Part shown: positions 1-15,994 of the stretch, in pieces | How positions within the stretch are numbered: the first letter of the stretch is position 1 | Layout: the number at the start of each line of letters is the position of its first letter | IMG/VR virus record: IMGVR_UViG_3300046092_000062 | Location: 62,001 to 126,000 of that record | DNA: 64,000 nucleotides | Reading direction: 5' to 3' (one strand) | Position numbers and translations under genes: made by a program | The notes under the pieces: generated by a model | Database searches by the model: none | Told to the model about the DNA's origin: nothing | The model's input: only the letters and a program-made list of their open reading frames with translations

Positions 1-3
1 TGT

Positions 4-77
4 TGGGGATTAGTTAAACGGTATAACTACGGATTTTGATTCCGTCATTAGTGGTTCGATTCCACTATCCTCTGCCA
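4..77 (+). tRNA. tRNA-Gln(TTG)
   Basis: Cloverleaf; anticodon arm ACGGA-ttTTGat-TCCGT; GTTCGATTC T-loop; encoded CCA at 75-77; T1.T72 mismatch. Confidence 0.9.
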
Positions 78-249
78 AAATTTCATATCCTGTACGAACG
101 GCAGCTCTTGCTTTTCAGGATAATCTCGTGTAAAATGTTTAACACAAGAGAAGCTCTTAGCATCGGAATAAGTTCCGTTGCCGAGTTTAAGTAATTCATC
201 GAATCCAGGATTGGGTTTGCTCATACTGTATTTAACACAAGGAAACAAA

Positions 250-753
250 ATGCCCTGGATCCAAAACGTAGCACGTAGCGATGTCACTAAAGGGTTTCAC
301 ATCAACCCCGGTGATAACGCTATGTTGATTCAAATCGTTGACTGCGGCAGCGAATTTCCTACTCCCCTTTACAAGTTTAAAGAAGCTCATCAATTTGAGT
401 TTTTAGATGTAGAGGAAAAGGACTACGTTCTTGAAGAAGAAATGAAGTGCAGTCACGAACAAGCCGCAGAGCTAGTTCGTTTGTTGCAACATGCACTAGA
501 GAATCGCATGAACGTTATTGTTCATTGCCATGCTGGTGTTTGCCGCAGCGGTGCAGTATGTGAAGTTGGAGTCATGCTTGGCTTTGATGACACTGAAGCA
601 TTTCGTGCTCCTAACTTGCTAGTCAAGCATCGCATGATGAAGCAGCTGGGTTGGACGTATGATGAGAACGAAGAGCCAACGATCAATGGTCAACCATATC
701 AATACAGCGCAGGCGGGATCATTTTACCCCCAAGTCACGAAGGTGATATTTAA
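250..753 (+). CDS. Cys-dependent protein tyrosine/dual-specificity phosphatase
   Basis: HC-x5-R active-site loop VHCHAGVCRSG; start moved to ATG 250 after AAGGA RBS. Confidence 0.8.
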   Translation: MPWIQNVARSDVTKGFHINPGDNAMLIQIVDCGSEFPTPLYKFKEAHQFEFLDVEEKDYVLEEEMKCSHEQAAELVRLLQHALENRMNVIVHCHAGVCRSGAVCEVGVMLGFDDTEAFRAPNLLVKHRMMKQLGWTYDENEEPTINGQPYQYSAGGIILPPSHEGDI

Positions 754-1094
754 TGCACAAAATCTACGTTGATGTTCCGTACGAGTACAACTATGTGTAC
801 CGAGTTGATCATGATGAGTCCACTGGTCCAGAAGTGCTAGCAAGGGACTTTGGGGTAAAGTTTGCGTTTATTTGCAACGCTGCTCAGAGATTCAGCAACC
901 CCGAAGGACTTGGAGCAGTGGGCAATACAGGTGATGCTCACGTGGTATGGCTTGAGTCGGAGAAAGACGAATTGTTCTTTCTAATCAAGTCCGGATTTAC
1001 CAAGTTAAATAAAGATGTAGTTGAACTATTCTTGAAAGCAAGATTGGAAGCTATGCGATTAAAAGAGAGGAATGATTATGAAACGTGTAATTGA
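753..1094 (+). CDS. hypothetical protein
   Basis: 113-aa ORF, TAATG-coupled to upstream gene. Confidence 0.6.
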   Translation: MHKIYVDVPYEYNYVYRVDHDESTGPEVLARDFGVKFAFICNAAQRFSNPEGLGAVGNTGDAHVVWLESEKDELFFLIKSGFTKLNKDVVELFLKARLEAMRLKERNDYETCN

Positions 1095-1749
1095 GGTCCG
1101 TGCCGCAGAAGGTGGCGAAGACAGTAAACTATTTGTAAAAGACTTGGCACAAGCCTACATTAAATTTGCACACAGCAAAGGCTGAACTAGCCGCCTGATA
1201 AATGAGTATCTTGGCGAAGTTCATATCTTAGTCGAGGGTGCTGATTTATCTGGCTTATACAACGAGCCAGGTGGACACCGAATACAGCGTGTACCACCAA
1301 CAGAGCGAAAAGGACGAGTACATACCAGTACTGTTACTGTCGCTGTTGTTGATCCAAGTGTGCCGACCACTACCATAAAAGAATCTGATTTGCGGATTGA
1401 ATGGTACAGCGGAACAGGCGCAGGAGGACAACACCGTAACAAGCACCAAAACAGTGCCCGCGTTACGCACATACCTAGTGGCACAGTAGTAACAGCACAG
1501 TGTCGCAGTAGGGAAAATAGTTTGGCAGAAGCTATGCAAACTATTCGAGAAAGAGTTGACAAGATAACAAAAGACTGTTATAATAACAACTTAGCAAGCA
1601 ACAGAAAGCAACAAGTTGGTTCAGGGATGCGAGGAGACAAAATTCGCACATACCGCTTTCAGGACGATACAGTTAAAGATCACGTAAGTGACAAGACTGC
1701 AAGCGTTAAGAAAGTGTTAGCCGGCAACTTTGACTTACTTTGGAATTAA
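1078..1749 (+). CDS. prfA: RF1-type peptide chain release factor lacking domain 1, with in-frame TGA at 1183-1185 (probable readthrough)
   Basis: Frame from ATG 1078 (GAGAGG RBS): MKRVIEVRAAEGGEDSKLFVKDLAQAYIKFAHSKG*TSRLINE...RIQRVPPTERKGRVHTSTVTVAV...GTGAGGQHRNK; PxT specificity motif and GGQ. The ORF track shows only the 1360-1749 part. Confidence 0.88.
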
Positions 1750-1763
1750 AAAGGAAAATTGAC

Positions 1764-1787
1764 ATGAAACGTTCAGGTAAACGATAG
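1764..1787 (+). promoter_or_regulatory. putative 7-codon leader peptide MKRSGKR-TAG followed by two hairpins
   Basis: AAGGAA RBS at 1751-1756, ATG 1764, TAG 1785-1787; stem 1787-1795/1815-1823 and stem 1823-1828/1838-1843. Confidence 0.45.
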
Positions 1788-1849
1788 TGTCATCCTAGAC
1801 CCCCGTATGGTCCTGGATGGCACGTAAAAGAAAAATATTTACGATCCAT

Positions 1850-1924
1850 CCACAGCAAACTTTGCTGGCGAAGTACCCGGCTCTTACCCGGACTAACAGA
1901 GTTCGATTCTCTGGCTGTGGACCA
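1850..1924 (+). tRNA. atypical tRNA-Lys(CTT)
   Basis: Acceptor CCACAGC/GCTGTGG + A + CCA; anticodon arm CCGG-ctCTTac-CCGG; canonical T-arm; A8-A9 instead of T8-A9 and odd D-loop. Confidence 0.7.
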
Positions 1925-1927
1925 TAT

Positions 1928-2002
1928 GGGGGTATAACTTAGCGGCTAAAGTATCTGGCTTTTAACCAGAGAACCAGAGTTCGATTCTCTGTGCCCCTAC
2001 CA
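1928..2002 (+). tRNA. tRNA-Lys(TTT)
   Basis: TCTGG-ctTTTaa-CCAGA anticodon arm, T-arm, CCA. Confidence 0.92.
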
Positions 2003-2127
2003 TATCAAAGTACGCTAGTGCATTATAGTGAATCAGGTCGCTCCTGTGGAAGCTAAAACTGCATCAATTGCCCTGGAGGGAAAGGTCGACGGCTGCGGTT
2101 CGATTCCGTAGCGTACTTTGATATGGT
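1999..2127 (+). ncRNA. long-stem tRNA-like element A
   Basis: Perfect 19-bp inverted repeat 1999-2017/2109-2127 with T-arm GCGG-TTCGATT-CCGT abutting the 3' strand. Confidence 0.55.
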
Positions 2128-2134
2128 AAGGCAT

Positions 2135-2212
2135 GGAAGTATAGCTCAGTTGGTTTAGAGCATCGGACTTTTAATCCGAGGGTCCTGGGTTCGAGCCCCA
2201 GTGCTTCTACCA
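2135..2212 (+). tRNA. tRNA-Lys(TTT), second copy
   Basis: TCGGA-ctTTTaa-TCCGA anticodon arm, T-arm, CCA. Confidence 0.92.
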
Positions 2213-2282
2213 TATGCAAACACATTTTTCTGAACGCCAGTCATTTGCCGTGCAGAGTAGGTCAAGTGTGTTTACATATGGT
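2209..2282 (+). ncRNA. long-stem element B
   Basis: 19-position stem 2209-2227/2264-2282 with one C.A mismatch. Confidence 0.5.
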
Positions 2283-2412
2283 ACTAGAAGGAGTAATTAA
2301 CCTTCGCCATAATCGGGAGTCATGACCCGATGAACTCGTAGTCTTCTAATTGGTTAGGAAAGGCCCGTTATGGGGCTTAATGTTGGTTCGAGCCCAACCT
2401 ACAATGAGTTCG

Positions 2413-2509
2413 CATATATAAACATACTAGTCGGCGACTAAGCGTATTGCACGGTCTCTACGGAGTGAAAGGGTCAGTGGTTCGATTCCACATAGTGTGT
2501 TTTTATATG
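2413..2509 (+). ncRNA. long-stem tRNA-like element C
   Basis: CATATA-T-AAACATACTA / TAGTGTGTTT-T-TATATG stem with T-arm GTGG-TTCGATT-CCAC. Confidence 0.5.
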
Positions 2510-2642
2510 GTGCAAAAGTAATAAAGGGACTTGGGTGCCCAGAGTTTTGAAAACTCACACACTATAGTCGGCATGTGTGTCCACCGTGCATTAACCGACG
2601 TTTAAATAAAGCTAGGGCAAGCGCCAGTTAACGGTGGAGCCT

Positions 2643-2756
2643 ATATAGAAGTATTCTTGGCATAAGTCAAAGCGGGAGAAGAAGCCTAGTATCTGCAGAT
2701 GCGAAAGTTTCAGAGCTTGACTCCTCCTATGCTTGCATTTGAGAGTGCTTCTATAT
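2643..2756 (+). ncRNA. long-stem element D
   Basis: 16-bp stem 2643-2658/2741-2756 (3 G-U) followed by GGTA like elements A and B. Confidence 0.4.
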
Positions 2757-2857
2757 GGTATAGTGTAATGCGAATGCACGGGATCGCCACATAAGCCTTT
2801 GACGAGCGGTGGAACAAGGTTCAGGTGTGGTAGGAACCCACAATGCCATTTAAATTT

Positions 2858-2933
2858 GCCTTTATAGCTCAGTTGGTAGAGCAGAGGATTGAAAATCCTT
2901 GTGTCACTGGTTCGAATCCGGTTAGAGGCACCA
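2858..2933 (+). tRNA. tRNA-Phe(GAA)
   Basis: Canonical cloverleaf, ttGAAaa loop, CCA. Confidence 0.95.
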
Positions 2934-2948
2934 AATTATAGGAGTAGT

Positions 2949-4172
2949 ATGGCAAAGTTTTCGGAGAAGTTCTTCTGTCCTGCACCGTGGACAATGTTAT
3001 ACTATCATGCCAACTCTCCTAGTCCGTGCCACATGATTAAAAATTTAGAGATGGAAGCGACCCCATCTGAATATTTTAATAGCGAATGGCTTAAGAATAT
3101 AAAACAAGAAATGCAGCAAGGGATTGTTCCTGCTGCATGTTCTGGTTGTAAAGAGCGTGAGAGTCATGGACTAAAAAGCACACGCGGCGCTATTTGGAAT
3201 TACTATAATGTAGGACCTGAGCCCGAGTACGAAGATCAATGGTTCGCAAACAAGTTTACCGCAGACAGCCCAACCGTTCCAAAAAGAATTGAGCTTAGGT
3301 TTAGTAATCTATGTAATATGAAATGCAGGATGTGCGACGAAACATCTAGTTCCAGCTTTGCAGCAGAAAAAATTGAACATAAGATTAAACCAGACAAAAA
3401 CGGAAGTCATCTTGAGCATAGCGTGATACCCATCACAAAGATAGAAAACAATTCAATTGATGGCCTCATGGATACTGCCTTTCTAGCGTCAGTTCGAAAG
3501 GTATGTTTAACCGGTGGCGAACCATTTTTAATAAAAGAATATTACAGCTATCTAGATTACTTAATAGACAACGGTTTTAACAAAACACTAGACGTAGAAT
3601 TGTTTACAAATTGCAGTGTATATAATCCATTGTTTATTGATCGACTTAGTAAATTTAAAACAGTTCAAATGGTGATGAGCATCGATGCTGTGGGCAAAGC
3701 GGCTGAATATATTCGTAGTGGAACCGATTGGCCTAAAGTGGAAGCCAATGTGCTTCGACTAAATCAACTAGCAGCTCCATTTAAAATGGAAGTTACAACT
3801 GCCATATCTGCATACAGCCTAATGGACTTTGCAGAGACTGCACGATTTCTAATGAGGTTGTACACCGAAAACAACACCATTGGCGTAAAATGTTACAACG
3901 TAACTTCGCCTCCGGGTATGCACTTTAATAATCTGCCTAAGCCGTTGAGAATACAAGCAATAGATCAAATCGACAAGGCAGTAGAGATTCTAACAGCACC
4001 AAACTATTTGGTACTAGTTACAGAGTTGTTAAACGTGAAACACGCATTGACTACTTCGTCCCCGGATACACCACTGGCATTCTTTGACTATACTAAGAAG
4101 TACGACACCATTAGGGGAGAGTCGTTTGCGGAAGTGTTTTTAACATCTCCTGACAGCACAGATTACTTGTAA
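2949..4172 (+). CDS. radical SAM protein with Cys-rich (twitch/SPASM-like) N-terminus
   Basis: CNMKCRMC (CxxxCxxC), LTGGEPF motif; start moved to ATG 2949 after GGAG. Confidence 0.88.
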   Translation: MAKFSEKFFCPAPWTMLYYHANSPSPCHMIKNLEMEATPSEYFNSEWLKNIKQEMQQGIVPAACSGCKERESHGLKSTRGAIWNYYNVGPEPEYEDQWFANKFTADSPTVPKRIELRFSNLCNMKCRMCDETSSSSFAAEKIEHKIKPDKNGSHLEHSVIPITKIENNSIDGLMDTAFLASVRKVCLTGGEPFLIKEYYSYLDYLIDNGFNKTLDVELFTNCSVYNPLFIDRLSKFKTVQMVMSIDAVGKAAEYIRSGTDWPKVEANVLRLNQLAAPFKMEVTTAISAYSLMDFAETARFLMRLYTENNTIGVKCYNVTSPPGMHFNNLPKPLRIQAIDQIDKAVEILTAPNYLVLVTELLNVKHALTTSSPDTPLAFFDYTKKYDTIRGESFAEVFLTSPDSTDYL

Positions 4173-5161
4173 AGGTTGGCCACATACACAATATGGTCAA
4201 TGGGGTGGTCTTTCCAATTATACACTGCTGGTAGATGATGTTTAATCTCCATAATTACAAACGCTTGCAGCAATGAATGGCTTCGTAGAAAATCTGTTAA
4301 CTTATAGGTTTTTCTAAATTGTTCAATTTCGCTAAACCATTGTAAGTTTTGCTGGGCATCAATGTATGTTTGGTGGAATGACTTTGTGTAACTAGTATCA
4401 AATGTGCCAGCCCCGATAGAGTTAACAAAATTGTCGAACCAAGTGGGAAATCGATCGCTAACAATATCAGTTAACGAGATCTGGTACAGGTGATCTATTC
4501 GGTCTTTGGGTAGTACATAGGTTTGTTCGTTAACTTCATGCCCGTTGTGTTGATTCCGTACACGATACCATTCAGAATACCATTCCAGCCCGCCGGATAA
4601 CTTATCATAGTCGATGCCTCTAAGGAATGGGAAAATTTCGTAATACGATTCAACAAACAAATTCCGCGCCTCAATAGAGTCTTGACAATTAAAACTATCA
4701 AACCCAAACCGACGTTCGACTATTTGATTCGCCTTAAAGAAAACAGGCCATTTGGTGATAGTATTTAATGATCCGTATTTGCGATCGTCGAGTACATCGT
4801 TATCATTGATAATAACAATAACTGGATCGGGATCACTTAATAGTATCGATCGGATAGCCATGTCCGGTCTTGACACATCAAAAGATGTTGGTATGTCATG
4901 ACAGTTGAGTAGAAAAACTTTTTTCTCTTTTGGTTGATTGTATGTCATCCAAATTAGATGTTGATGAATACTTTGATGAGTTGGTATTCTTGCGTGTAAG
5001 TGCGCAGTACCTATTCCTCCAAACATCTCACTAACTTCTTTGTTTACTGGATCATCAACGGTTTGACTAGCTGAGTCAATTTCACTTTTGTTGATGCACC
5101 AATGTATATAACTACCCGACGACCCCGGCGGGTATAATAGATAAATGTTCTTTGACAGCAT
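4163..5161 (-). CDS. hypothetical, sulfotransferase-like P-loop N-terminus
   Basis: MLSKNIYLLYPPGSSGSYI; start moved to 5161, TAAATA on minus strand at 5166-5171. Confidence 0.6.
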   Translation of the reverse strand: MLSKNIYLLYPPGSSGSYIHWCINKSEIDSASQTVDDPVNKEVSEMFGGIGTAHLHARIPTHQSIHQHLIWMTYNQPKEKKVFLLNCHDIPTSFDVSRPDMAIRSILLSDPDPVIVIINDNDVLDDRKYGSLNTITKWPVFFKANQIVERRFGFDSFNCQDSIEARNLFVESYYEIFPFLRGIDYDKLSGGLEWYSEWYRVRNQHNGHEVNEQTYVLPKDRIDHLYQISLTDIVSDRFPTWFDNFVNSIGAGTFDTSYTKSFHQTYIDAQQNLQWFSEIEQFRKTYKLTDFLRSHSLLQAFVIMEIKHHLPAVYNWKDHPIDHIVYVANLYK

Positions 5162-5182
5162 GGAATATTTATTGAAATAAAT

Positions 5183-5256
5183 GCTCTTATAGGTAAATGG
5201 TATATCGGCGCTGTGGTATAGCGCAGTCCTAAGTTCGATTCTTAGTAGGAGCACCA
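5183..5256 (+). tRNA. tRNA-Thr(GGT)
   Basis: Acceptor GCTCTTA/TAGGAGC, anticodon arm GCGCT-gtGGTat-AGCGC (unusual G32), CCA. Confidence 0.82.
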
Positions 5257-5271
5257 CGTGATAAGTATCTA

Positions 5272-6183
5272 ATGCAACATAATTTTTTACCATGTAAATA
5301 TCCAATTATTTGTGCCCCGATGAATAGAGTGTCGGACGTTAAGCTAGCACTTGCAGTTCATAGAGCTGGGTGCTTGCCGAGCCTTGTGGTCCACAATCAT
5401 GATGAATCTGAATTAGCTAACGATGTGGCTAAGATTGTGAACGAAATGAAAGAGTTCACAGAGCTGTCGGGATCAAGCGATTTTATACTTGCACTTAGAT
5501 CAGATTTTTTATTAAAAGATACCAAGCTGCTCCCTGCGATGTTAAAGTACAGGCCTGCGTATGTTGAATTCTTTGACAATATTGATTGGTCTGACATAAA
5601 GGTGGTCAACCTTATTAAGCTGCTTAGAACATACAGAATTAAAATAATCTATAAAATACTTGCACCTAGAATATTGGGCAAGTTAGTGGAATTTGTTGAC
5701 GCTATTGACGTTAAGGGCCCTGATGCCGCTGCCCGTGTGAATACCACAACTACTACTAGTTTAGTAGATCGGATTAAGCAACTGAAATCCGCTAATCCAC
5801 ATTTGCACATTATTGCATCTGGTGGTATGTCATCGCAACAGGATGTGCAGGCATGTATTGACGCTGGCGCAAGTGCAGTGGCATTGGGCACAGTATTTGC
5901 CATGTCAGAAGAGTCGTCGATTTCAGTTGAGACAAAAATGAAAATGATTGAATCAACATTCTCACAAGTTGTGAACATTGGCGAAGCCCAACAAAATGCG
6001 TTAGTGTTTACAAACGAAAAAGATGTTGACGGCAACCACACTGTGGGACTAGAACTTGGTATAAAAAGCCCAGTCGCTGGTCATGTGTTTGTGGGGAAAG
6101 CAATTGATTCAATTGACTCAATTAAAACAGTGGAAACAATCGTGTCGGAGCTAACTGGGGTAACTGATGCAAAAACCCGATGA
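5272..6183 (+). CDS. nitronate monooxygenase / FabK-like FMN TIM-barrel oxidoreductase
   Basis: YPIICAPM N-terminus, IIASGGM and AVALGTVF FMN-binding motifs. Confidence 0.75.
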   Translation: MQHNFLPCKYPIICAPMNRVSDVKLALAVHRAGCLPSLVVHNHDESELANDVAKIVNEMKEFTELSGSSDFILALRSDFLLKDTKLLPAMLKYRPAYVEFFDNIDWSDIKVVNLIKLLRTYRIKIIYKILAPRILGKLVEFVDAIDVKGPDAAARVNTTTTTSLVDRIKQLKSANPHLHIIASGGMSSQQDVQACIDAGASAVALGTVFAMSEESSISVETKMKMIESTFSQVVNIGEAQQNALVFTNEKDVDGNHTVGLELGIKSPVAGHVFVGKAIDSIDSIKTVETIVSELTGVTDAKTR

Positions 6184-7006
6184 TGTAACTATTTGTTACT
6201 TCGGGGGCAGCGGCGGCTTCTTTTGCTTGTACCTTCTTTTGCTTAGTAACCAATACCAATGCTGCTTCGAAAATGGGTCAGCTGACGCACACGTAACAAA
6301 AGTTACGCAATGGGATATACAGAATGTTTCCAATTGGAAAGATAATGAGATATGGCCTAACAACAGCAACACCAAAGCAGAGAGTTTCGATGTTAGCAAA
6401 GTCTTTTTTCTTTGTAACCCATTGCAATTAACGCAAAAGCCCGGAGTGCAAGATGACGTGCTATCTAAATGTCCAGGAAAGAAAATTCTATTGTACACAG
6501 ATTTAGAAACACAATGGCATCTAACAAAAACTAAACGTGCCTACTGGTTTCAAAAAGGACAGCAGCTAAACGGACAAGGACCAAGTTGGCAGACAGCCGA
6601 ATATCGTGAAGAACAAGTGCTAATATGGTATAATAACATCAGACAGGATAGCTGGCCTCAAATCTCCAAGGCAGATGATTTTTACAATCTTCCGCAGGAA
6701 ATACAGGATATTTGTATAACTGACTATAGCATGTGGGAAGTCCTTGACATTGGCAAATTTGACAATGATGACTACCGACCCCGTGGAGTAGAGTTTAGGG
6801 GAGACATAGTGTACAAGAAAGTAGTGGACATTATGCCTAAGATGGACATAGTGGTTAAGCTACAAGATTTGATTAAAACACAAGGCCGTGTGTTGTTCGA
6901 CCAGCTTGGTATTGAGACAAACAAAGACACGCAAAAGTTCATAATCCAGTACCTGTCGTTGCACACAGTCGAGCAGCGGAAATTCCTATTAGGCAAGCAC
7001 ATATAA
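6167..7006 (+). CDS. hypothetical, sulfotransferase-like P-loop N-terminus
   Basis: ICYFGGSGGFF; 279 aa. Confidence 0.55.
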   Translation: MQKPDDVTICYFGGSGGFFCLYLLLLSNQYQCCFENGSADAHVTKVTQWDIQNVSNWKDNEIWPNNSNTKAESFDVSKVFFLCNPLQLTQKPGVQDDVLSKCPGKKILLYTDLETQWHLTKTKRAYWFQKGQQLNGQGPSWQTAEYREEQVLIWYNNIRQDSWPQISKADDFYNLPQEIQDICITDYSMWEVLDIGKFDNDDYRPRGVEFRGDIVYKKVVDIMPKMDIVVKLQDLIKTQGRVLFDQLGIETNKDTQKFIIQYLSLHTVEQRKFLLGKHI

Positions 7007-7031
7007 TCAATTTGGCAACCAACTCATAATT

Positions 7032-8240
7032 ATGATTAATTTAAAACTAGGATATTACTCATGCAACGGAGTCACGTTCGATTCTAAGATTGCTGCATGT
7101 GTGTATTCTGTGCAGCACAATAACGCATTAGTTACGTGGACATTCAACGACCGAGAGTTTAATCAGCACAACTGGACACAAGAACCTGACCTAACACTGG
7201 ATCAATTGTATGATATTAGATCAAAGCAGCTAAGAGATCAGTACGACTATGTTATATTGAGCTACAGCGGCGGCGCCGACAGTCACAATATCCTAATGAG
7301 CTTTATTCGTCAAGGCCTCCATATAGACGAGATTGTGGTAAACACAACTGAGAAAGCTAGTGCAAGATTCACAGAGTTAGATAAAAACAATCTTGACCCC
7401 CGCAATGCAGGAGCAGAGCATGTGTTTCAGACGTTGCCTAGACTACGTGAAATTCAGGGATTGATCCCTAAAACAAAGATTAGTGTGTTGGATTTGTCGG
7501 ATCATCTATTTGAGAGTTTTTCAAAAGCCGATGATGCTAGCTGGGTATTAGAAAAGCGCGAAAGCCTAAACCCAGCTGGAGTAACACGGTTTAATTATCT
7601 GCACTTTGATCAATTGCGCAAACAGTTTGATAAAGATAAAAAAATTGCATTAGTGCTAGGAATCGAAAAGCCCAGGGTGTTTATTAGACACGGACAGTTG
7701 GTACTACGGTTTACAGACCGTGCGGCCAACATTGTTACTGTAGCAGAACACGTTAAAGAATACACAAATAGCACAGTAGAATTCTTCTACTGGAGTCCAG
7801 ATGCAGTGCCAGTGGTTATCAAACAAGCGCACACTATCAAGCGATGGCTTGAGGCTAATCCAGACAAACAGCATCTCTGGGACGTTGACACACTAACACC
7901 GGAGATGGTGAGACTAGTGCATGAGCGAGTGTACAGACCACTGCTATACACTACGTGGGACAACAGTTGGTGGCAATCAAACAAAGCAGTTAACGATTGG
8001 ACAAGCGAGTTTGACCAGTGGTTTAAGGATGGGTACAGTGATACTCGTGCTTACCAAGTGTGGGCAGAGGGTATTGAGTATGTTCGTGAAATTTTGCATC
8101 CTTACATAAACACTACTCATCTTGTTAATGGTCAAGCAGACGGCCTTGACATATTTGTTAAAGAGTACTTAATTGGACCAGTGAAAAATCTTTGTCCAGA
8201 ATTAAAGAATAAACTGTATAGGCATTTGCAAAATAAATAA
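7032..8240 (+). CDS. PP-loop (adenine nucleotide alpha hydrolase) family ATPase
   Basis: ILSYSGGADS PP-loop motif. Confidence 0.78.
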   Translation: MINLKLGYYSCNGVTFDSKIAACVYSVQHNNALVTWTFNDREFNQHNWTQEPDLTLDQLYDIRSKQLRDQYDYVILSYSGGADSHNILMSFIRQGLHIDEIVVNTTEKASARFTELDKNNLDPRNAGAEHVFQTLPRLREIQGLIPKTKISVLDLSDHLFESFSKADDASWVLEKRESLNPAGVTRFNYLHFDQLRKQFDKDKKIALVLGIEKPRVFIRHGQLVLRFTDRAANIVTVAEHVKEYTNSTVEFFYWSPDAVPVVIKQAHTIKRWLEANPDKQHLWDVDTLTPEMVRLVHERVYRPLLYTTWDNSWWQSNKAVNDWTSEFDQWFKDGYSDTRAYQVWAEGIEYVREILHPYINTTHLVNGQADGLDIFVKEYLIGPVKNLCPELKNKLYRHLQNK

Positions 8241-8273
8241 CTAGCGTGTATAATACACAGAAGGGACGATGCA

Positions 8274-8417
8274 ATGAAGTCAAGAGAGACAATCGAAAAG
8301 GCATACGGCAACGTCCCAAAAGAAATTGGGGTCACAGTTGATGTATTTAACTGGGTCCCGGAGTTTAGAGGTGTTAAGTATTACTGGATTCGTGCAGTAA
8401 GATTTTTCACCAGGTAA
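8274..8417 (+). CDS. small hypothetical protein (47 aa, below ORF-track cutoff)
   Basis: MKSRETIEKAYGNVPKEIG...; AAGGGA upstream; fills the gap before tRNA-Ser. Confidence 0.5.
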   Translation: MKSRETIEKAYGNVPKEIGVTVDVFNWVPEFRGVKYYWIRAVRFFTR

Positions 8418-8423
8418 GAATAC

Positions 8424-8514
8424 GGAGTGTGGGCAGGCCGGTAATGCAGCACCCTGCTAAGGTGTAGACTTGTGATGAGCAGGTCATAGGGTTCGATTCC
8501 CTAACACTCCGCCA
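8424..8514 (+). tRNA. tRNA-Ser(GCT)
   Basis: Long variable arm, ctGCTaa loop, G73-CCA. Confidence 0.93.
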
Positions 8515-8532
8515 GTGATAAGTAAGTATAAT

Positions 8533-8608
8533 GCGGATGTAGCTCAGCTGGTAGAGCACAACGTTGCCAACGTCGAGGTCGTCGGTTCGAACCCGATCAT
8601 CCGCTCCA
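8533..8608 (+). tRNA. tRNA-Gly(GCC)
   Basis: GCGGATG acceptor, ttGCCaa loop, T73-CCA. Confidence 0.95.
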
Positions 8609-8613
8609 TAAAT

Positions 8614-8690
8614 GGCTCTCTAGTTCCAATTGGCAGAACATCGGATTCCAAATCCGAGTGTTGGGGGTTCGAATCCCTCGGGGGTCGCCA
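8614..8690 (+). tRNA. tRNA-Trp(CCA)
   Basis: TCGGA-ttCCAaa-TCCGA arm, G73-CCA; D-stem GTTC/GAAC. Confidence 0.93.
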
Positions 8691-8695
8691 ATATA

Positions 8696-9145
8696 ATGAA
8701 ATCAAAATTCTCCGATTCCCAATTACGCACAATCACGAAAGTGGTTACATACCGCGTGATTATCACATGTAGTCACATCATCAATGGGTTTATTGTTAGT
8801 GGTAGTCTTGCTCTTGGATTGCAAATTGCAGGCCTAGCAGCAGTAATTAACAGTTTGTTATTTTGGCTACACGAGCGCATGTGGAATAGGCTACAATGGA
8901 AACGTCTCCATTTAAACAGTTCTACGTTCGTAGAAACCAATCCTAGAAGCATCAGTAAGATATTAACTTGGCGCATTTTCTCAATGTCTAGTAATTTTCT
9001 CATCCCTTACTTGATAACTGGATCATGGGGATCAGCAGCGGCATTCCTTGGGATAGCAGTAATAGTTAACATGGCTCTATACTATCTACATGAACGAGTG
9101 TGGAACATAGTTAAGTGGGGTAAACAGGTCAACGGCCTTTGGTGA
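8696..9145 (+). CDS. membrane protein with two tandem DUF2061-like repeats
   Basis: RTITKVVTYR...LHERMWNRLQW and RSISKILTWR...LHERVWNIVKW; start moved to ATG 8696. Confidence 0.72.
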   Translation: MKSKFSDSQLRTITKVVTYRVIITCSHIINGFIVSGSLALGLQIAGLAAVINSLLFWLHERMWNRLQWKRLHLNSSTFVETNPRSISKILTWRIFSMSSNFLIPYLITGSWGSAAAFLGIAVIVNMALYYLHERVWNIVKWGKQVNGLW

Positions 9146-9207
9146 AATGGATATCATATCTGTCTTCGAAACAGATGGTGGGAGTTCGATCCTCTCAAGG
9201 CCGACCA
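9133..9207 (+). tRNA. tRNA-Arg(TCG)
   Basis: CGGCCTT/AAGGCCG acceptor, TCTGT-ctTCGaa-ACAGA arm, CCA; overlaps last 13 nt of upstream CDS. Confidence 0.88.
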
Positions 9208-9213
9208 AAATAG

Positions 9214-9242
9214 TTGACTTAGTCAACGGCAGTGTGTATAAT
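9214..9242 (+). promoter_or_regulatory. sigma70 promoter
   Basis: TTGACT-17 nt-TATAAT. Confidence 0.75.
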
Positions 9243-9266
9243 ACAAACTGTTCATAAAAGAGTTAG

Positions 9267-9454
9267 CCATGAGCAAGGCAGCTTTCTGTTACCAGTGGTA
9301 GGCGTAGTATCAATAATCTTGCAATTAGTGGCCTGTGTTTAAGTATCGGGAACCCCCGAGGCAACAAAACGATTTTAAAATTGAGAACCGTTTCGAGCCC
9401 ACAACGTGTGGTCTAGGTAGGCATTCGCAAGATGCTGCTTGATCTAGATCATGG
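9267..9454 (+). ncRNA. unidentified structured ncRNA (about 190 nt)
   Basis: Nested stems 9267-9272/9449-9454, 9274-9282/9434-9441, 9316-9322/9427-9433, 9331-9335/9418-9422 plus internal hairpins; no ORF; own promoter. Confidence 0.5.
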
Positions 9455-9469
9455 TTGCCCATCTGATCA

Positions 9470-10105
9470 ATGGGGACCAAGTGGTCCGCGGTTGAAAAAC
9501 AGAATTACATGGCTAACCCTTTTATGAATACATTAACGTTTCAGACCCCGGTACGTATAGTTAATAACTGGGATAAAACCACACAAGTAGCAAAGCACTG
9601 CATCGATCTAGTAAAGAGTCAATCGGCCAGTATCACTAGGGAATACAAGTACAGCGATTACGGATATCACTATGAACTAGGATCAACTGGCACAGTTAGT
9701 CACATCACTAACGGTAGTGCAGAATGGTATTCAGTGACTGGTAAGCTAATAGAATCTACCATGCGCTTTTTGCCGCTAATGCTAGATGACCTAGCAGACC
9801 TTGACCCTACGTTTGCTAGCATTAACTACATGGTGGGCAATGGCGCAGAGCATAGGGATCACGAAAGTCAGCAAACTGGGTTCAATTATTTTTTTGCTGA
9901 TTGTGACAGCACTACCTACGCAAGAAACGCAGACATCTGCGAATCCTATCCTAGCGTAAAAGACACAGGGTGGATCCTTGATATCCAACAACTACACAGC
10001 ATCTCAAATACAAACGAACGCATTTGGTTTAACCTTAGATTTGGTAAACCCTTTGCATATTGCAGAGATTGGTTTGCAGATCATTTGGTATTAACTTATG
10101 AATAA
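9470..10105 (+). CDS. hypothetical, possible 2OG-Fe(II)/cupin oxygenase
   Basis: HRD...LHS facial-triad-like spacing. Confidence 0.5.
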   Translation: MGTKWSAVEKQNYMANPFMNTLTFQTPVRIVNNWDKTTQVAKHCIDLVKSQSASITREYKYSDYGYHYELGSTGTVSHITNGSAEWYSVTGKLIESTMRFLPLMLDDLADLDPTFASINYMVGNGAEHRDHESQQTGFNYFFADCDSTTYARNADICESYPSVKDTGWILDIQQLHSISNTNERIWFNLRFGKPFAYCRDWFADHLVLTYE

Positions 10106-11273
10106 AATTATCTCAATTGAGCCTGCAATCGATCCAGTCAATCGTCCTACATTTTTGTTGGACTGGGAACTAACAATGAAGTGCAATTTGGATTGCGACT
10201 ACTGCTCGACTGGCATTGAGTACGGTGGTCACGACAACAGCACAGCACATCCTCCTAAAGACGAATGCTTAAAAACCATTGACTTCATGTTTGCTTATGC
10301 AGACAAGTACATGCAGCTAAAGCCCAAATGGCAGCGCATGGTGGTTCTCAATGTATACGGCGGCGAAAGTATATTTCATCCAGACATTGTTGAGATCCTA
10401 GAGCAGGTGCGAGCAAGACACACATACGATTGGCCATTGACTGTTACCTGCACAAGTAACGCAGTGGCTGGTAAGAATCTTTGGGAAAAGGTTGCAAACT
10501 TAATTGATGAGTTTACCGTTAGTTTTCACAGCAGTGCATTGCCTAAACAGAGACAGCAAGTACTAGACAACATACTTTATAATAAGGCTATCGGCAGGCG
10601 CCAAAAGGTGGTGTTTGTGATGCACAACGATCCTGTTTTGTGGGATATTAGCCAACAAGCTATTGAGTTTTGTAAAACACACGATGTTAGGTATGTAGTT
10701 AAAGCAAACGACACCCCTACACCTCAGTGGCAGTATAACAAAGAACAGTTTATTTACTTTCAAGATTACTACAAGTCACGCACACCAGCTAAGAGTAGGG
10801 ATGCTCTAACAAAGGCGCTGGATGCAGTGGAAACTGACACAGTTGGCATGGGTAAGGTCGGTCGAGGTTGTTGTGGTGGCCGAAAGCTATGCACTAACCA
10901 AGACCTACAACACCCAACAGCCTTTGTACCACATGCAGATTTCATGGGTTGGAGTTGCAGTGTTAACTGGTACTTCTTGTACATTAAACAGATCAATGGC
11001 GATGTGTACACAAACAAGGATTGCCGTATGCGCTTTGATGGTACAGTTGGTCCAATTGGTAATTTGTCAAATGGTAATCTTATACTAGAACAAGTGCAGA
11101 AAAACATTGACAACAAAGCCATGCCTGTTATACAATGTGCTAGAACAAGATGTATATGCGGTTACTGTGCTCCAAAAGCGCAAGACCCAAAAGATTTTGA
11201 AGCTATTATGGATAAACACATAGTTGACAAGCAAGTCAAATTTGTTTATAATAACAGCTTAGATGATAAGTAA
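10098..11273 (+). CDS. radical SAM protein with Cys-rich C-terminus
   Basis: CNLDCDYC, YGGES; C-terminal CCGG..C, CSV, CARTRCICGYC. Confidence 0.88.
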   Translation: MNKIISIEPAIDPVNRPTFLLDWELTMKCNLDCDYCSTGIEYGGHDNSTAHPPKDECLKTIDFMFAYADKYMQLKPKWQRMVVLNVYGGESIFHPDIVEILEQVRARHTYDWPLTVTCTSNAVAGKNLWEKVANLIDEFTVSFHSSALPKQRQQVLDNILYNKAIGRRQKVVFVMHNDPVLWDISQQAIEFCKTHDVRYVVKANDTPTPQWQYNKEQFIYFQDYYKSRTPAKSRDALTKALDAVETDTVGMGKVGRGCCGGRKLCTNQDLQHPTAFVPHADFMGWSCSVNWYFLYIKQINGDVYTNKDCRMRFDGTVGPIGNLSNGNLILEQVQKNIDNKAMPVIQCARTRCICGYCAPKAQDPKDFEAIMDKHIVDKQVKFVYNNSLDDK

Positions 11274-11284
11274 TTTATCACAAT

Positions 11285-11368
11285 GCGTAAGTGGTGGAAT
11301 GGTATACACTCTGGTCTTAGAAGCCAGCGCCGCGAGGATTGAGAGTTCGAGTCTCTCCTTACGCACCA
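11285..11368 (+). tRNA. tRNA-Leu(TAG)
   Basis: Variable arm, ctTAGaa loop, A73-CCA. Confidence 0.93.
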
Positions 11369-11398
11369 TTTATTATTTTAAGTTTTTCTAAAAAGTGC

Positions 11399-11464
11399 TT
11401 GACACTTAATGAAACTCTTGTTATAATAGATACATGTTAAGAAATTAACAAACGTTCTTTAAAA
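11399..11464 (+). promoter_or_regulatory. consensus sigma70 promoter plus boxA-like antitermination site
   Basis: TTGACA(11399)-17-TATAAT(11422); CGTTCTTTAAAA at 11453-11464 resembles rrn boxA TGCTCTTTAACA. Confidence 0.8.
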
Positions 11465-11465
11465 A

Positions 11466-11750
11466 TTTGTTTTGATGTAAAGTAAGCAGGCGTACCACGC
11501 TAATAGGTTGCGTGACTCTTGTCGAAAATTTGGTCCAGATAGAAAGCTGGGAACTCTTGAGTAGTCTGTAAGCGGCTACTGTGGCGTCTAACACCTATGA
11601 GTTAGAAACGATCTGTTCCACGTAGCAATACGCAGGAAGAATGATTGCAATAGAGTAGAGTAACGCTCTACCGGTTGCATGAGGGTCAACTGAAAGACGC
11701 AAGTCTTACCCGTTACCTTGTAACCAGGTAAAAAGAGGCATCAAAATAAA
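11466..11750 (+). ncRNA. unidentified multi-hairpin ncRNA (285 nt)
   Basis: 12-bp closing stem 11466-11477/11739-11750; at least 6 internal hairpins, several with GNRA loops; no ORF. Confidence 0.6.
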
Positions 11751-11764
11751 TTTCTAAATAACTG

Positions 11765-11838
11765 TTGACAGCAAATGAAAAGTTTGCTACAATAGCAGCT
11801 TAGTTAGACATTGTGCTAACTAACAAAGTTCTTTAAAA
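11765..11838 (+). promoter_or_regulatory. sigma70 promoter plus boxA-like site
   Basis: TTGACA(11765)-17-TACAAT(11788); AGTTCTTTAAAA at 11827-11838. Confidence 0.8.
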
Positions 11839-11855
11839 TAGATACGTATAAGAAG

Positions 11856-11970
11856 TTCTTATACACATGCACATAAATGCGTAGGCCACGCAGATATGGT
11901 TGGATTCATAGCTTGGGCTATTGCCCAGGTTGGCAGGTTCGAAACCTGTGAGTGTGCAGTTGTATAAGAA
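11856..11970 (+). ncRNA. long-stem tRNA-like element E
   Basis: TTCTTATACA/TGTATAAGAA and TGCACAT/GTGTGCA stems, T-arm GCAGG-TTCGAAA-CCTGT, D-like and variable-like hairpins, no CCA. Confidence 0.5.
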
Positions 11971-11974
11971 TTTA

Positions 11975-12875
11975 GGGCAGTTTAATGTCCTGCAAAGAGT
12001 ATGGTTCGCCCAGCTTGATGCGAAGAATAACTGTGGTGACACAGCCAAAGGAGGTATGCCTACATAACTCCGCTAGCAATAGTTCATTTAGACAAGCCTG
12101 CTCACTCCTGTGAGGGAGCGTTCACTCAGCGACGGGTGGATGTAACAGTGACGCAAAGTGCATAGGGAAGAACGTTTGCTTACAAGCCTGAGATTGCATC
12201 AAGGGGAACTTGAGTAGATGGAAAGTAACAGGTGGTGCTGACTTCTATGCGAAACCAACTTTGTTAATTGGTATGAGAAAGGGTAGTGTATTGGTTCGAA
12301 GGGTTGCACCTAAGAGCTCGTATGCAGTTTTAGTGGTTGGTGGACGTAGTAATACGAACATTGGTCGCAAAAGACGACTGAGTAGCTCGCAAGGCAAAAG
12401 GTACGTGGTGTGTTGTATTGTGTATTCCAAAAGATTATGCAGCAACTGAGTCAGCACATCGCAGTAGGTTGATATAGTTCATTGGTAGAACATCTGTCTC
12501 TTAAACAGAATGCGGTGGGTTCAATTCCCACTATCATTACAAAACGCAAAGACTGACTCGGTCGTATGTGAAAAGCATCTAATACTTGAGCCGCAAGGTA
12601 ATCAAGTCAGACGTAACTCGCAAGGTGAAATCTGTTTATGCAGGAAGTTTCGTAGCTACTTAGCGGTGGTGAATGGCTCTAAAGGTCAACGGGATAGAAA
12701 GCGTAGAATAGCATACGGCGACAAGACTACTGCCTGTCTTTAAAAACGGCGATGCTGACAGCAGACTAGACTACTATGCAAATAGGGTTTAGTGGAAGTC
12801 GGAAGAAAGTAGACTCGCAAGGTTTACAATAATGTCCGAGGTGTTGTTAGGTTAGGATGTATTCTCAGTCCGCCA
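11975..12875 (+). ncRNA. probable GOLLD large ncRNA (about 900 nt)
   Basis: ORF-free, GNRA (GCAA/GAAA) hairpin-rich, inside a phage tRNA cluster; segments such as GAAAGTAACAGGTGGTGCTGAC and 3' TATTCTCAG match my recollection of GOLLD; ends approximate. Confidence 0.65.
12468..12539 (+). tRNA. tRNA-Lys(CTT)-like module embedded in the large ncRNA, no CCA
   Basis: D-arm GTTC-attggta-GAAC, anticodon arm TCTGT-ctCTTaa-ACAGA, T-arm GTGGG-TTCAATT-CCCAC; weak acceptor, ends ACAA. Confidence 0.7.
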
Positions 12876-12969
12876 ACTTATATGCAAACACATTAGTAAA
12901 AGTCTGTAAAAGGACGAAGCAACTGACTCTGTAATAGGAGCTGTTTGCTCAGTGTGTTTACATATAAGT
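12876..12969 (+). ncRNA. long-stem element F
   Basis: ACTTATATG-C-AAACACATT / AGTGTGTTT-A-CATATAAGT, nearly the same stem as element B. Confidence 0.55.
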
Positions 12970-13056
12970 ATGCTTTGATGGTTAAAGTTGGATAGGTAGT
13001 GGGTAGCTTGTGAAATCATAGTAGCAAGTCCACAGCAACCCAAACGGTAGAAGCAG

Positions 13057-13129
13057 CTTATTTGAAAGCACATTTGTTCCTGAAAGATTTTACGGTTTGG
13101 ATGGTTCAGCAAATGTGTTTCCAAATAAG
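13057..13129 (+). ncRNA. long-stem element G
   Basis: CTTATTTG-A-AAGCACATTTG / CAAATGTGTTT-C-CAAATAAG. Confidence 0.5.
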
Positions 13130-13224
13130 AATTTGGTGATTGTGTGGAGCTAAGGCGATTCGCTGGACTATGAAGCACGACGAGAGCGTTGAACTTGAAA
13201 TAGGTTCAACCACCAGACTAATAT

Positions 13225-13300
13225 GGACGGTTGGCAGAGCGTTTATGCGCCGGATTGCAAACTCGGTATAAGGTAGGTTAGACTCCTACACCGTCCTCCA
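13225..13300 (+). tRNA. tRNA-Cys(GCA)
   Basis: ttGCAaa loop, T73-CCA; non-canonical T-loop TTAGACT. Confidence 0.85.
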
Positions 13301-13595
13301 TTTTTGCTAGTTTTTTAAAACTAGTTGTGACGTATGGAGATGAGAGATTGCACCTCTAGTTAGCACTTGACACGCTTACTGGAATATTAATCGTGATCCA
13401 GTGACCCGAGTCCCCTGGCTTAATTGCCTTGTTTGTTGACTCTCGGAAATATTGGTATCCTCTGCTTGTTGTATTTTGCTTTAGAAAACAGTTGCCTTGA
13501 AAATCAATTATATCTAATGTACATTGCACATTGTCCCGCAATTGACTTGCCATACGTTGCACCCCTATTAAAATCAAACAGAAAGGAACTCGATT

Positions 13596-14162
13596 ATGAA
13601 ATTTACACTTCGCAAAGCAAACGCCCTACAAAACACAATCCAGGAACACATCAAGACGATCGACATCGCATTGACGGTTTCCCTTAACGAGTTCCAAAGT
13701 TCAACTTCGGTGCTTGGTACCGCACGTGAGACATTGGTCCGCAACGATGCCAAGCGCACACAGTTGACCAAGGCCTTGTACGCAGTCCGTGCAAAGGTTG
13801 GTCGCGCCAACACAGAAGCCGGTGTTGCAGATCTGTTGACAGACGCTGCATTCATTGACAAGCGTTTGGGCTTCTTAAAAGGCCTAACTGAAAGCAAGGT
13901 TGTCGAAGAAATCGCAGTCATTGAAGGCAAGCTAGAAAAGCTTCGCGCACAAGACAACAAGAACCGTGTTTACGGTTACAACGACACAGTTGACACTGGT
14001 GTGCTTGAAGCGGACCAGATTGAAGGTTACAAGGCAGAAATGCGTGACCTGAAGAAACAAAAGCAAAGCATTAATGACAAGGTCCTGGAACTTAACGTTC
14101 GCACCGAGATTGAGTTGGATGCAGATACCGTTTCTTTGCTACAGGCAGAGCAACTGGTATAA
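13596..14162 (+). CDS. hypothetical coiled-coil protein
   Basis: 188-aa ORF, AAAGGA RBS, strong codon bias. Confidence 0.75.
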   Translation: MKFTLRKANALQNTIQEHIKTIDIALTVSLNEFQSSTSVLGTARETLVRNDAKRTQLTKALYAVRAKVGRANTEAGVADLLTDAAFIDKRLGFLKGLTESKVVEEIAVIEGKLEKLRAQDNKNRVYGYNDTVDTGVLEADQIEGYKAEMRDLKKQKQSINDKVLELNVRTEIELDADTVSLLQAEQLV

Positions 14163-14169
14163 ATATTGA

Positions 14170-14244
14170 AGCAGAGTAGAGAAATGGTATCTCACCAGGC
14201 TCATAACCTGGAGACAGTTGGTTCGATTCCAGCCTTTGCATCCA
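14170..14244 (+). tRNA. tRNA-Met(CAT), initiator-like
   Basis: CCAGG-ctCATaa-CCTGG arm; 1:72 mismatch (A.A); CCA. Confidence 0.85.
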
Positions 14245-14250
14245 ATACAT

Positions 14251-14325
14251 GCCTTGATAGCTCAGGGGTAGAGCGTCTCCTTTACACGGAGAGGGTCCGC
14301 GGTTCGAAACCGTGTCAAGGTACCA
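14251..14325 (+). tRNA. tRNA-Val(TAC)
   Basis: TCTCC-ttTACac-GGAGA arm, CCA. Confidence 0.93.
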
Positions 14326-14333
14326 AAGGAAAT

Positions 14334-14407
14334 GCGGGATTAGTTTAATGGTAAAACGAGATCCTTCCAAGTTCAAGTCAGCGGTTCGATTCCGCTATCC
14401 CGCTCCA
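14334..14407 (+). tRNA. tRNA-Gly(TCC)
   Basis: GCGGGAT/ATCCCGC acceptor, T73-CCA, ctTCCaa loop (weak anticodon stem). Confidence 0.88.
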
Positions 14408-14442
14408 TAACATTACCCCGCCTGGTGCGGGGTTTGCCATTT

Positions 14443-14898
14443 ATGAAAACAAAATATCAACAACTATACATGGACTGGGCGCATCGTGCAGCAGAACTAA
14501 GTCATGCACGTAGGCTCAAGGTAGGAGCAGTTATTGTCAAGGACGATGTGGTCATTTACGGCTACAATGGCATGCCAGCAGGGTGGGATAACAACTGCGA
14601 AGAACACCCTAAGATTGTTAACAAACAAACCTATGCCATTGAAGAAGATACAACTAGATTAGTAACACGACCTGAGGTATTACATGCTGAATCAAATGCT
14701 ATTGCAAAACTGGCGAAGTCTCCTAACGTTGGTAACGGGGCTGACTTATTTGTTACTCACAGTCCTTGTATCCACTGTGCCAAGCTCATTTTTCAGTCAG
14801 GTATTCGTCGTGTATTTTATGGTGCAAACTATCGCGATGATGCAGGAGTCCAATTCCTCAGGAGTTCGGGCATAACAGTTACACAAATTGAAGAATAA
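14443..14898 (+). CDS. dCMP deaminase
   Basis: HAE and PCxxC zinc motifs (LHAESNA, HSPCIHC). Confidence 0.92.
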   Translation: MKTKYQQLYMDWAHRAAELSHARRLKVGAVIVKDDVVIYGYNGMPAGWDNNCEEHPKIVNKQTYAIEEDTTRLVTRPEVLHAESNAIAKLAKSPNVGNGADLFVTHSPCIHCAKLIFQSGIRRVFYGANYRDDAGVQFLRSSGITVTQIEE

Positions 14899-14900
14899 CT

Positions 14901-14925
14901 AGCCCACTTCGGTGGGCTTTTTCTT
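14901..14925 (+). terminator. rho-independent terminator
   Basis: GCCCAC-TTCG-GTGGGC-TTTT. Confidence 0.85.
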
Positions 14926-14983
14926 GACTATACTTTCATGCTCTGCTATAATAGTAGTTCAACTAACCCAATGGAATACTTTA

Positions 14984-15145
14984 ATGTTTGAATCAATTGA
15001 AATCCGCAAAGCAGCAAACGGCTTTATCCTTATCGTGCATACCGAAGACGAAACAAAAGAATTTGTGTACGATACTGAACGCAAGCTGATGCGATCACTT
15101 AAATCGCAGCTGGGTCAAAAGATCACAGCTGACGACCAAGATTAA
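14984..15145 (+). CDS. small hypothetical protein (53 aa)
   Basis: Preceded by TTGACT(14924)-17-TATAAT(14947). Confidence 0.6.
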
Positions 15146-15897
15146 TCTCTACGCTCGATATCTTCTTCAGTGCAGTGTTTGCCGTATTGTATCTCTACAA
15201 TGCGACAAGGTGCAGTAAACGGATTGTGTAATCGATGCCATCCGTCTTTGGGTATATGGATACTCATGTGTTCGCTTAATTGTTGAGCTGGCATATGGTA
15301 TCCATTTTCCATTTGTTGCTCAGCAACACATTGTCCTTCGCTAACGTGCCAGTATTCTGCACGGTGCTGATGCCTTTGTAGACTGAGACTTTGTCCTGGA
15401 TTGATAGTCAACTCCTTGACCTTAGTACCTGGCACATCGTGTAGGACACGATAGTAACCCCATGGGCGTTCTGTCTTAGGTGCTTTCCATTCTTGTAGAA
15501 TCCAGCTTGAACTGTTGGCCTTGTTTTCACCACCAACACCAAACACAAACTCTACTCCAGTAACTGACATTTCGGGGATGTTGTCTCGTGTTCTATCGCC
15601 ACCATTGGCAAAGATGATTTCATCGTTGGGATATTGTGCTTTAAGCTCTTCCAGTAACTTAATGGCACTACCATCGCTGTCGTCCCAGTAAGTGGTTTGG
15701 GTAACATACTTGATCTTGCTTACAACAGCATATCGTTCGTCCCATGGCATAAATGCTGCACCCTTTTTGCGTTGTAGCCAAGCGTCACTGTTTAGGCCGA
15801 CGACCAAGATATCGCCAAGTTGGCTTGCTGCTTTGAGATAGGCAATGTGCCCACTATGGATAGGATCAAACCCACCGGTTACGATTACAATTTTCAT
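15142..15897 (-). CDS. cytidylyltransferase-like (HxGH) domain fused to mannose-6-phosphate isomerase-type cupin
   Basis: [11 protein letters not shown]; C-terminal ERPWG...[12 protein letters not shown]. Confidence 0.85.
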
Positions 15898-15994
15898 ACA
15901 AATATTTATTCGGTGGTCTTGCTCTTGCTTTTAAAACTTGATCCTTGTAAAATAGCTAAAATAAATACCTTATCAACTATTATTGGAGAATTAC

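Follow-up and report, generated by a model that had tools for sequence, protein, structure and literature searches.

The locus studied here raises the question of why a pair of phage lysine tRNA genes should be preceded by a tiny open reading frame (ORF) whose stop codon abuts a stable RNA hairpin. The window analysed was a 64,000-nt stretch, bases 62001-126000 of a single 320,767-bp virus record (IMGVR_UViG_3300046092_000062). The record carries 48 tRNA genes in one array and uses the standard genetic code, and near-identical DNA occurs in freshwater, wetland, and wastewater metagenomes. An initial annotation, made from the sequence alone, had described a Lys/Arg leader peptide ending in UAG, two hairpins, and three consecutive tRNA-Lys genes directly behind a gene for release factor RF1. 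It had proposed a translation sensor of RF1 activity or tRNA-Lys(UUU) availability controlling expression or processing of the tRNA array, or a recoding signal. We first tested whether these features were present and conserved.

The observation was confirmed, and the arrangement is far from chance. An SD-like AAGGA lies at 1751-1755, 8 nt upstream of the ATG; like the promoter, mini-ORF, hairpins, alternative helices, first two tRNA-Lys genes, and RF gene described below, it is on the plus strand. The mini-ORF runs from ATG 1764-1766 through AAA CGT TCA GGT AAA CGA to TAG 1785-1787 (MKRSGKR), with Lys codons AAA at 1767-1769 and 1779-1781. Hairpin P1 (1787-1823) has a lower stem 1787-1795/1815-1823 that starts at the G of the TAG, an upper stem GACC/GGTC at 1798-1801/1809-1812, and a loop at 1802-1808; its energy was -21 kcal/mol (z = -4.3), with 0 of 200 shuffles as stable. 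The second hairpin, P2 (GUAAA/UUUAC, 1824-1828/1838-1842), was weak (-2.7 kcal/mol, z = -2.1). ARAGORN called tRNA-Lys(CUU) at 1850-1924, tRNA-Lys(UUU) 3 nt behind it at 1928-2002, and a further tRNA-Lys(UUU) at 2135-2212. The third tRNA-Lys is not contiguous with the others, because a 132-nt tRNA-like element (2003-2134) lies between it and the second. This element belongs to a chain of structured, partly tRNA-like elements between the tRNA genes (2003-2134, 2213-2283, 2281-2420, 2417-2516, and 2517-2762), which have long closing stems and T-arm-like GGTTCGATTCC hairpins, are each bounded by an ATATGG-type spacer, and are not called by ARAGORN or Rfam. The RF1-type ORF ends at 1749, and both it and the mini-ORF begin ATG AAA CGT (MKR; 1078-1086 and 1764-1772), which may be coincidence. 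Farther away, a dual-specificity/tyrosine-phosphatase-like ORF (250-753) lies upstream of the RF gene, with homologues following the RF gene in several relatives, and a radical-SAM ORF (2949-4172) lies behind tRNA-Phe.

The initial annotation had called the first tRNA-Lys odd, and this was also borne out. It has C1-G72, A8, and a C27.A43 mismatch that leaves a 4-bp anticodon stem, and the Rfam tRNA model did not list it even at E <= 10. Nevertheless, it has the cloverleaf, 7-bp acceptor stem, T-loop, and encoded CCA of a canonical bacterial tRNA, and the cloverleaf is its MFE fold. Of 80 distinct leader-linked tRNA-Lys(CUU) sequences, all have C1-G72 and 71 have a mismatch at 27:43, whereas the companion tRNA-Lys(UUU) usually has that pair. 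The same window contains a second tRNA-Lys(CUU) at 12468-12540, embedded in a full-length GOLLD RNA (12405-12871, 198.8 bits), with an ordinary G1 start and a 5-bp anticodon stem. The genome therefore wraps two different tRNA-Lys(CUU) genes in two different structured RNAs.

To determine how widely the module is conserved, relatives were retrieved in several ways. A search with the RF protein found 316 related loci in IMG/VR, and only 4 of the best 80 had the leader directly behind the RF gene; these four keep the mini-ORF (MKRIAKM, MKRKSRKL), P1 with changed but still complementary stems, and complements for the alternative pairings described below. A pattern built on P1 hit at least 119 viral stretches. 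A retrieval anchored only on the 19-nt junction between the two tRNAs, without use of the leader, gave 107 stretches, and all 76 distinct upstream regions with enough sequence carried the leader. Altogether, 129 distinct versions were recovered, from uncultured jumbo phages, and tRNA-Lys(UUU) followed tRNA-Lys(CUU) in 114 of 128. In contrast, no match to 1751-1935 was found in 50,697 GenBank phage records. In 596 Gb of prokaryote sequence (185,579 species genomes) the P1 pattern hit 59 times, and only two of these hits were real leaders, both on short MAG contigs (1.8 kb and 3.9 kb). A covariance-model search of 1751-1850 against Rfam 15 returned only noise matches with E >= 2.

The conservation of the mini-ORF points to translation. 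When the versions were anchored on P1 alone, all 129 had a stop at the foot of P1, and in all of them the nearest ATGAAR was in frame, an exact multiple of three (18-27 nt) upstream. The stop was TAG sharing its G with the stem in 128 versions and TAA followed by the stem G in one (the version designated L315); no version had TAA or TGA in the place of the TAG itself. There were 28 peptide variants of 6, 7, 8, or 9 codons, so that indels came only in threes. Codon 2 was Lys in 128 of 128 (AAA 123, AAG 5) and the penultimate codon was AAA in 128 of 128, whereas the other codons varied: codon 3 was mostly Arg with free third-position change (CGT 88, CGA 29, CGC 3), and the last codon was Arg, Leu, Gln, Pro, Met, or Ser. 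An SD 4-mer lay 5-8 nt upstream of the invariant ATG in 123 of 128. No experiment or ribosome data were available, and translation is inferred from sequence conservation only. This is the pattern of a translated ORF whose length is flexible but whose start, two Lys codons, and stop position are fixed.

We then examined the RNA structure. Folding of 1750-1930 gave an unexpected minimum-energy structure that the initial annotation had missed, in which the loop and 3' half of P1 (1802-1820) form a continuous antisense to two other stretches and which is mutually exclusive with P1. In helix P3, 1814-1820 pairs with 1846-1852, which covers positions -4 to +3 around the 5' end of tRNA-Lys(CUU), i.e., its RNase P site; P2 caps this helix. 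In the long-range helix P4, 1802-1813 (the P1 loop plus the upper 3' strand) pairs with 1919-1930, which spans G71 G72 A73 CCA of tRNA-Lys(CUU), the UAU spacer, and the first GGG of tRNA-Lys(UUU), or positions -9 to +3 of the latter. The closed fold therefore buries both RNase P sites.

Both folds were tested in a structure-blind MAFFT alignment of 82 versions. The P1/P2/acceptor state had 91.7% of cells paired, against 25-48% when partners were slid by 1-3 columns, and the P4/P3/P2 state had 90.5% paired, against 30-49%. In the lower stem of P1, 98.5% of cells were paired with compensatory changes, and the variant L294 carries a doubly compensated stem foot (GAGCCA/TGGCTC). P2 had 70.7% of cells paired, with a GC-to-AU compensatory change at the closing pair, and P3 had 90.6% paired. 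Alignment column 96, the A of GGAUGG, changed together with its P1 partner (U-A 46, A-U 26) and also with its P3 partner (A-U 46, U-A 28); a nucleotide that covaries with two different partners is direct evidence that both folds are used. P4 was mostly invariant in sequence, but its length covaried: loops of the forms CCGUAUGG, CCGUAUUGG, and CCGUAUAUGG went with junctions ACCAUAUGG, ACCAAUAYGG, and ACCAUAUAYGG, respectively. At least 11 contiguous P4 pairs were present in 119 of 128 versions, against a mode of 5-6 for shuffled junctions. Conserved G.U pairs in P1 and P4, the P4 pair being kept in 75 of 82, show that the pairing is in RNA of the plus strand and not a DNA inverted repeat.

Energy calculations were used to examine the order of events. 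P1 was the MFE fold of the nascent RNA 1742-1830, and P1 plus P2 remained the best fold of 1785-1853. The full precursor preferred P3/P4 in 122 of 123 versions, by a median of 15.6 kcal/mol, although this comparison ignores tRNA tertiary structure. When the stretch from the 5' end to 12 nt past the stop was made unavailable, as under a terminating ribosome, P3 formed fully in 86 of 123 versions and with at least 5 bp in 109; the effect of the ribosome is thus modelled only. A further helix, P0, between the SD/AUG region and the 5' strand of P1 would complete a 1:2/3:4 chain. It is possible in most versions (78.8% paired) and drives the MFE switch in the window, but it showed no covariation and is absent in variants such as L294, and it is kept only as a possibility.

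A consensus sigma-70 promoter (TTGACA, 17 nt, TG-TATAAT; 12 of 12 matches with an extended -10) was found at 1556-1584 inside the 3' part of the RF gene, 179 nt upstream of the ATG, and is the likely start of the leader/tRNA transcript in this phage. A perfect TTGACA-N16-18-TATAAT promoter ended 20-30 nt upstream of the ATG in 31 versions and an 11/12 one did so in 10 more, and in 3 versions, this window among them, a 12/12 promoter ended 166-179 nt upstream. No match of 11 or more occurred on the reverse-complement control. The leader is thus the very 5' end of a dedicated transcript in many phages. Contigs of four freshwater metatranscriptomes covered 1757-1858 at depths 10- to 90-fold above the RF gene, and RNA contigs of relatives skipped 2202-2864. 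Because these depths sum many relatives and favour conserved stretches, and DNA carry-over is not excluded, they were taken only as presence in RNA libraries; the contig ends coincide with the edges of the conserved core and were not read as RNA ends. The leader was also specific for its tRNA. Among 3,772 tRNA genes in 2.5 Mb of these phage loci, an SD-led mini-ORF 15-100 nt upstream was found at 126 of 131 distinct tRNA-Lys(CUU) upstream regions, against at most 13% for any other tRNA type. The few mini-ORFs recurring elsewhere (MQESAKL, MQRIANP, and others) lay inside uncalled tRNA-like genes and are artefacts, and no other leader of this kind lies in the tRNA region of this genome.

The interpretation offered by the initial annotation was therefore only partly supported: the coupling of a leader ORF, inferred to be translated, to RNA structure and its link to the tRNA-Lys genes hold, but the links to RF1 and to recoding do not find support. 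The neighbouring gene (1078-1749) encodes a truncated RF1-type factor lacking domain 1, with Pfam PCRF and RF-1 domains and prfA as the best NCBIfam match. Lack of conservation of the mini-ORF and stems next to homologous RF genes had been named in advance as grounds for rejection, and this condition was fulfilled as worded, with adjacency in only 4 of 80 RF loci; however, it counts against only the RF1 reading and not against the element. Four leader-bearing phage genomes estimated to be 97-100% complete had no RF1-like gene, whereas the same search found it in three control genomes.

The RF gene itself contains an in-frame TGA at 1183-1185, at the position where E. coli RF1 has Trp, and this TGA is kept in 78 of 78 homologues at 68-97% identity. 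Genome-wide recoding was rejected as the cause, because ORFs of at least 100 aa cover 83.6% of the genome under the standard code and 152 of them end in TGA. The phage tRNA-Trp(CCA) genes were rejected as 4-bp-stem UGA readers, since both have 5-bp anticodon stems. The arrangement also differs from RF2-type (prfB-like) autoregulation by a +1 frameshift, because RF1-type factors do not read UGA and the ORF continues in the same frame. It looks like programmed read-through of a codon that only RF2 reads, i.e., cross-control of an RF1-like factor by RF2 activity, and we found no description of it.

The module is best explained as the 5' leader of a phage tRNA-Lys(CUU)-tRNA-Lys(UUU) transcription unit, built like a leader-peptide attenuator but acting on tRNA ends rather than on a terminator. 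In this view, P1 would form first during transcription, and while it stands the sequences around both tRNA 5' ends and the CCA end would be single-stranded, so that the tRNAs could fold, be cut by RNase P, and be trimmed. A ribosome that translates the ORF to its stop would hold the whole 9-bp lower stem of P1 in its mRNA channel; this stem is about the length of mRNA drawn into a ribosome with the stop in its A site, an inference that rests on established footprint sizes. The freed 3' strand and loop of P1 would then pair into P3 and P4, the thermodynamically favoured, closed state. Because reaching the stop requires decoding two Lys codons, the last always AAA and read by tRNA-Lys(UUU), poor Lys decoding should stall the ribosome upstream of P1 and release the phage's own lysine tRNAs, whereas good decoding should close the precursor. 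The analysis itself establishes the parts, their conservation, both alternative folds, and the exclusive link to tRNA-Lys; translation of the ORF, the direction of the switch, RNase P as the affected step, and Lys sensing are our inferences from these. We prefer this model with no more than even confidence. There are only two Lys codons, and AAA as second codon and Lys at the penultimate position also favour initiation and termination in E. coli, so their conservation need not mean sensing. All versions are homologous, and the link to tRNA-Lys is one evolutionary event rather than repeated independent evidence. Moreover, a ribosome stalled at the second AAA would already open about 4 bp of P1, P4 might coexist with the lower stem of P1 as a pseudoknot, leaving only P3 under ribosome control, and the closed state could be the productive one, for example as an RNase III substrate, which would invert the logic. 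The most likely reading is that ribosome position on the Lys codons decides whether the tRNA ends are free or sequestered.

The main rival, which we consider possible but less likely, is that P3/P4 is a processing scaffold, a leader-trailer duplex enclosing tRNA-Lys(CUU) like the stems around rRNAs, which sets the order or site of cleavage (RNase III, RNase E, RNase P) or protects the precursor. The mini-ORF would then only recruit a ribosome that melts the kinetic trap P1, or stabilise the 5' end, and the Lys codons would be kept for efficient initiation and termination. This reading is consistent with P3/P4 being the ground state in 122 of 123 versions, with the approximately 19-22 stacked pairs that P4 plus P3 give on one continuous strand, and with the abundance of the leader fragment in RNA libraries, as expected of a stable processing product. 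However, it does not explain why only tRNA-Lys among 3,772 tRNAs has such a leader, why the penultimate codon is never AAG, or why a strong P1 that competes with the scaffold is itself maintained by compensatory changes.

A sensor of RF1 or UAG, in which dwell time at UAG would set how long P1 is held open, is unlikely as the general function. In its favour, UAG occurs in 128 of 129 versions, an RF1-type gene with a programmed in-frame UGA lies next door, and the genome has a well-formed tRNA(CUA) that would compete with the phage RF1-like protein. This tRNA (genome position 187515-187589; locus L324:216-290; 66.7 bits against the Rfam tRNA model) lies outside the window and far from the tRNA array, has its own consensus TTGACT-N17-TATAAT promoter just upstream, and is 100% identical in the closest relative, making it a candidate amber suppressor in a genome where 48 of 475 long ORFs end in TAG. 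In contrast, the G of UAG is the first base pair of P1 (G-C in 82 of 82), so that structure alone explains it, one version has UAA followed by G, and the four nearly complete genomes lacking the RF gene also lack any sequence similar to this tRNA(CUA). An added layer of this kind in this phage cannot be excluded. A recoding element is very improbable despite the stable hairpin at the stop codon and the tRNA(CUA), because the frame after the stop stays open for anything from 3 to 98 codons, with a second stop after 3 codons in 46 of 128, one-nucleotide indels in the P1 loop shift that frame, and no downstream ORF exists, only tRNAs.

Among known systems, the leader-peptide attenuators of amino-acid operons (trpL, hisL, pheL, thrL, leuL) share a short SD-led ORF and a chain of mutually exclusive pairings, in which a ribosome at the leader stop masks the segment that would otherwise hold the open fold and a ribosome stalled upstream leaves that fold standing. 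The module has the ORF with its own ribosome-binding site near the transcript 5' end and the mutually exclusive hairpins, but no terminator-like site was found between 1787 and 1930, and P3/P2 is followed by the tRNA and not by a U-run. In those attenuators the regulatory codons are cognate to the product and usually stand in a run; here only two conserved Lys codons stand before tRNA-Lys genes, and since they are not tandem and have alternative explanations, they do not settle whether they are regulatory codons in the attenuator sense; in addition, the controlled genes are tRNAs rather than enzymes, and the host is a phage. In translational attenuation leaders (ermC, cat, cmlA), ribosome position on a very short ORF likewise re-pairs a downstream hairpin and exposes or hides a functional site without terminating transcription, but those leaders expose a ribosome-binding site and respond to a drug-stalled ribosome, whereas here the hidden sites are RNase P sites and a CCA end. 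The T-box riboswitch is also a leader RNA tied to one tRNA species, with a UGGN stretch that pairs with the NCCA end (UGGU with ACCA here). In the present module, however, the pairing is in cis with the precursor and extends into the spacer and the next tRNA, the element contains an ORF inferred to be translated, there is no specifier loop or T-box sequence, and no Rfam T-box match was obtained at E <= 1 in 1-16000 or at E <= 10 in 1740-2010. In leader-trailer processing stems of rRNA and some tRNA precursors (RNase III sites), sequences on both sides of a stable RNA also pair into a long helix from which the mature RNA protrudes, but here the 5' strand of that helix is alternatively locked in a hairpin whose foot is a stop codon.

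Phage-encoded lysine tRNAs with unusual anticodon arms have been linked to counter-defence against anticodon nucleases (e.g., PMC10264068, PMC11555353), but no regulatory leader for them was described in the papers that could be searched. A more speculative and rather unlikely reading is that the leader is an inducible counter-defence that monitors decoding of AAA by the host's tRNA-Lys(UUU), the usual victim of anticodon nucleases. When that decoding fails, it would release a nuclease-insensitive tRNA-Lys(CUU) together with a fresh tRNA-Lys(UUU). A 2026 paper proposes that 4-bp-stem tRNAs with C34 can also read the NNA codon by "extended superwobble" (PMC13092985), and the conserved 4-bp anticodon stem would by this idea let tRNA-Lys(CUU) read AAA as well as AAG; for these tRNAs that is a lead and not a result. 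If true, this would be the first attenuator that controls tRNA maturation and the first regulated phage anti-defence tRNA. A betaproteobacterial host is hinted at by a phage-encoded permuted tmRNA of betaproteobacterial type (116 bits; genome position 180859-181245; locus L325:160-546).

Ribosome-sensed leader RNAs are textbook regulators of amino-acid genes and resistance genes, but in the literature searched none is known to gate the maturation of a tRNA and none is known in front of phage tRNA genes. The purpose of phage tRNA genes has been debated for decades and is now linked to escape from tRNA-cleaving defences. The module described here is short, sharply defined, widespread in giant freshwater phages, and easy to test. 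Even if only the architecture holds, it is a new RNA family for which two alternative folds have been shown. If the sensing model holds, it shows that phages meter their own lysine tRNAs against the state of host decoding, and it would also supply a natural part that couples translation to RNA processing.
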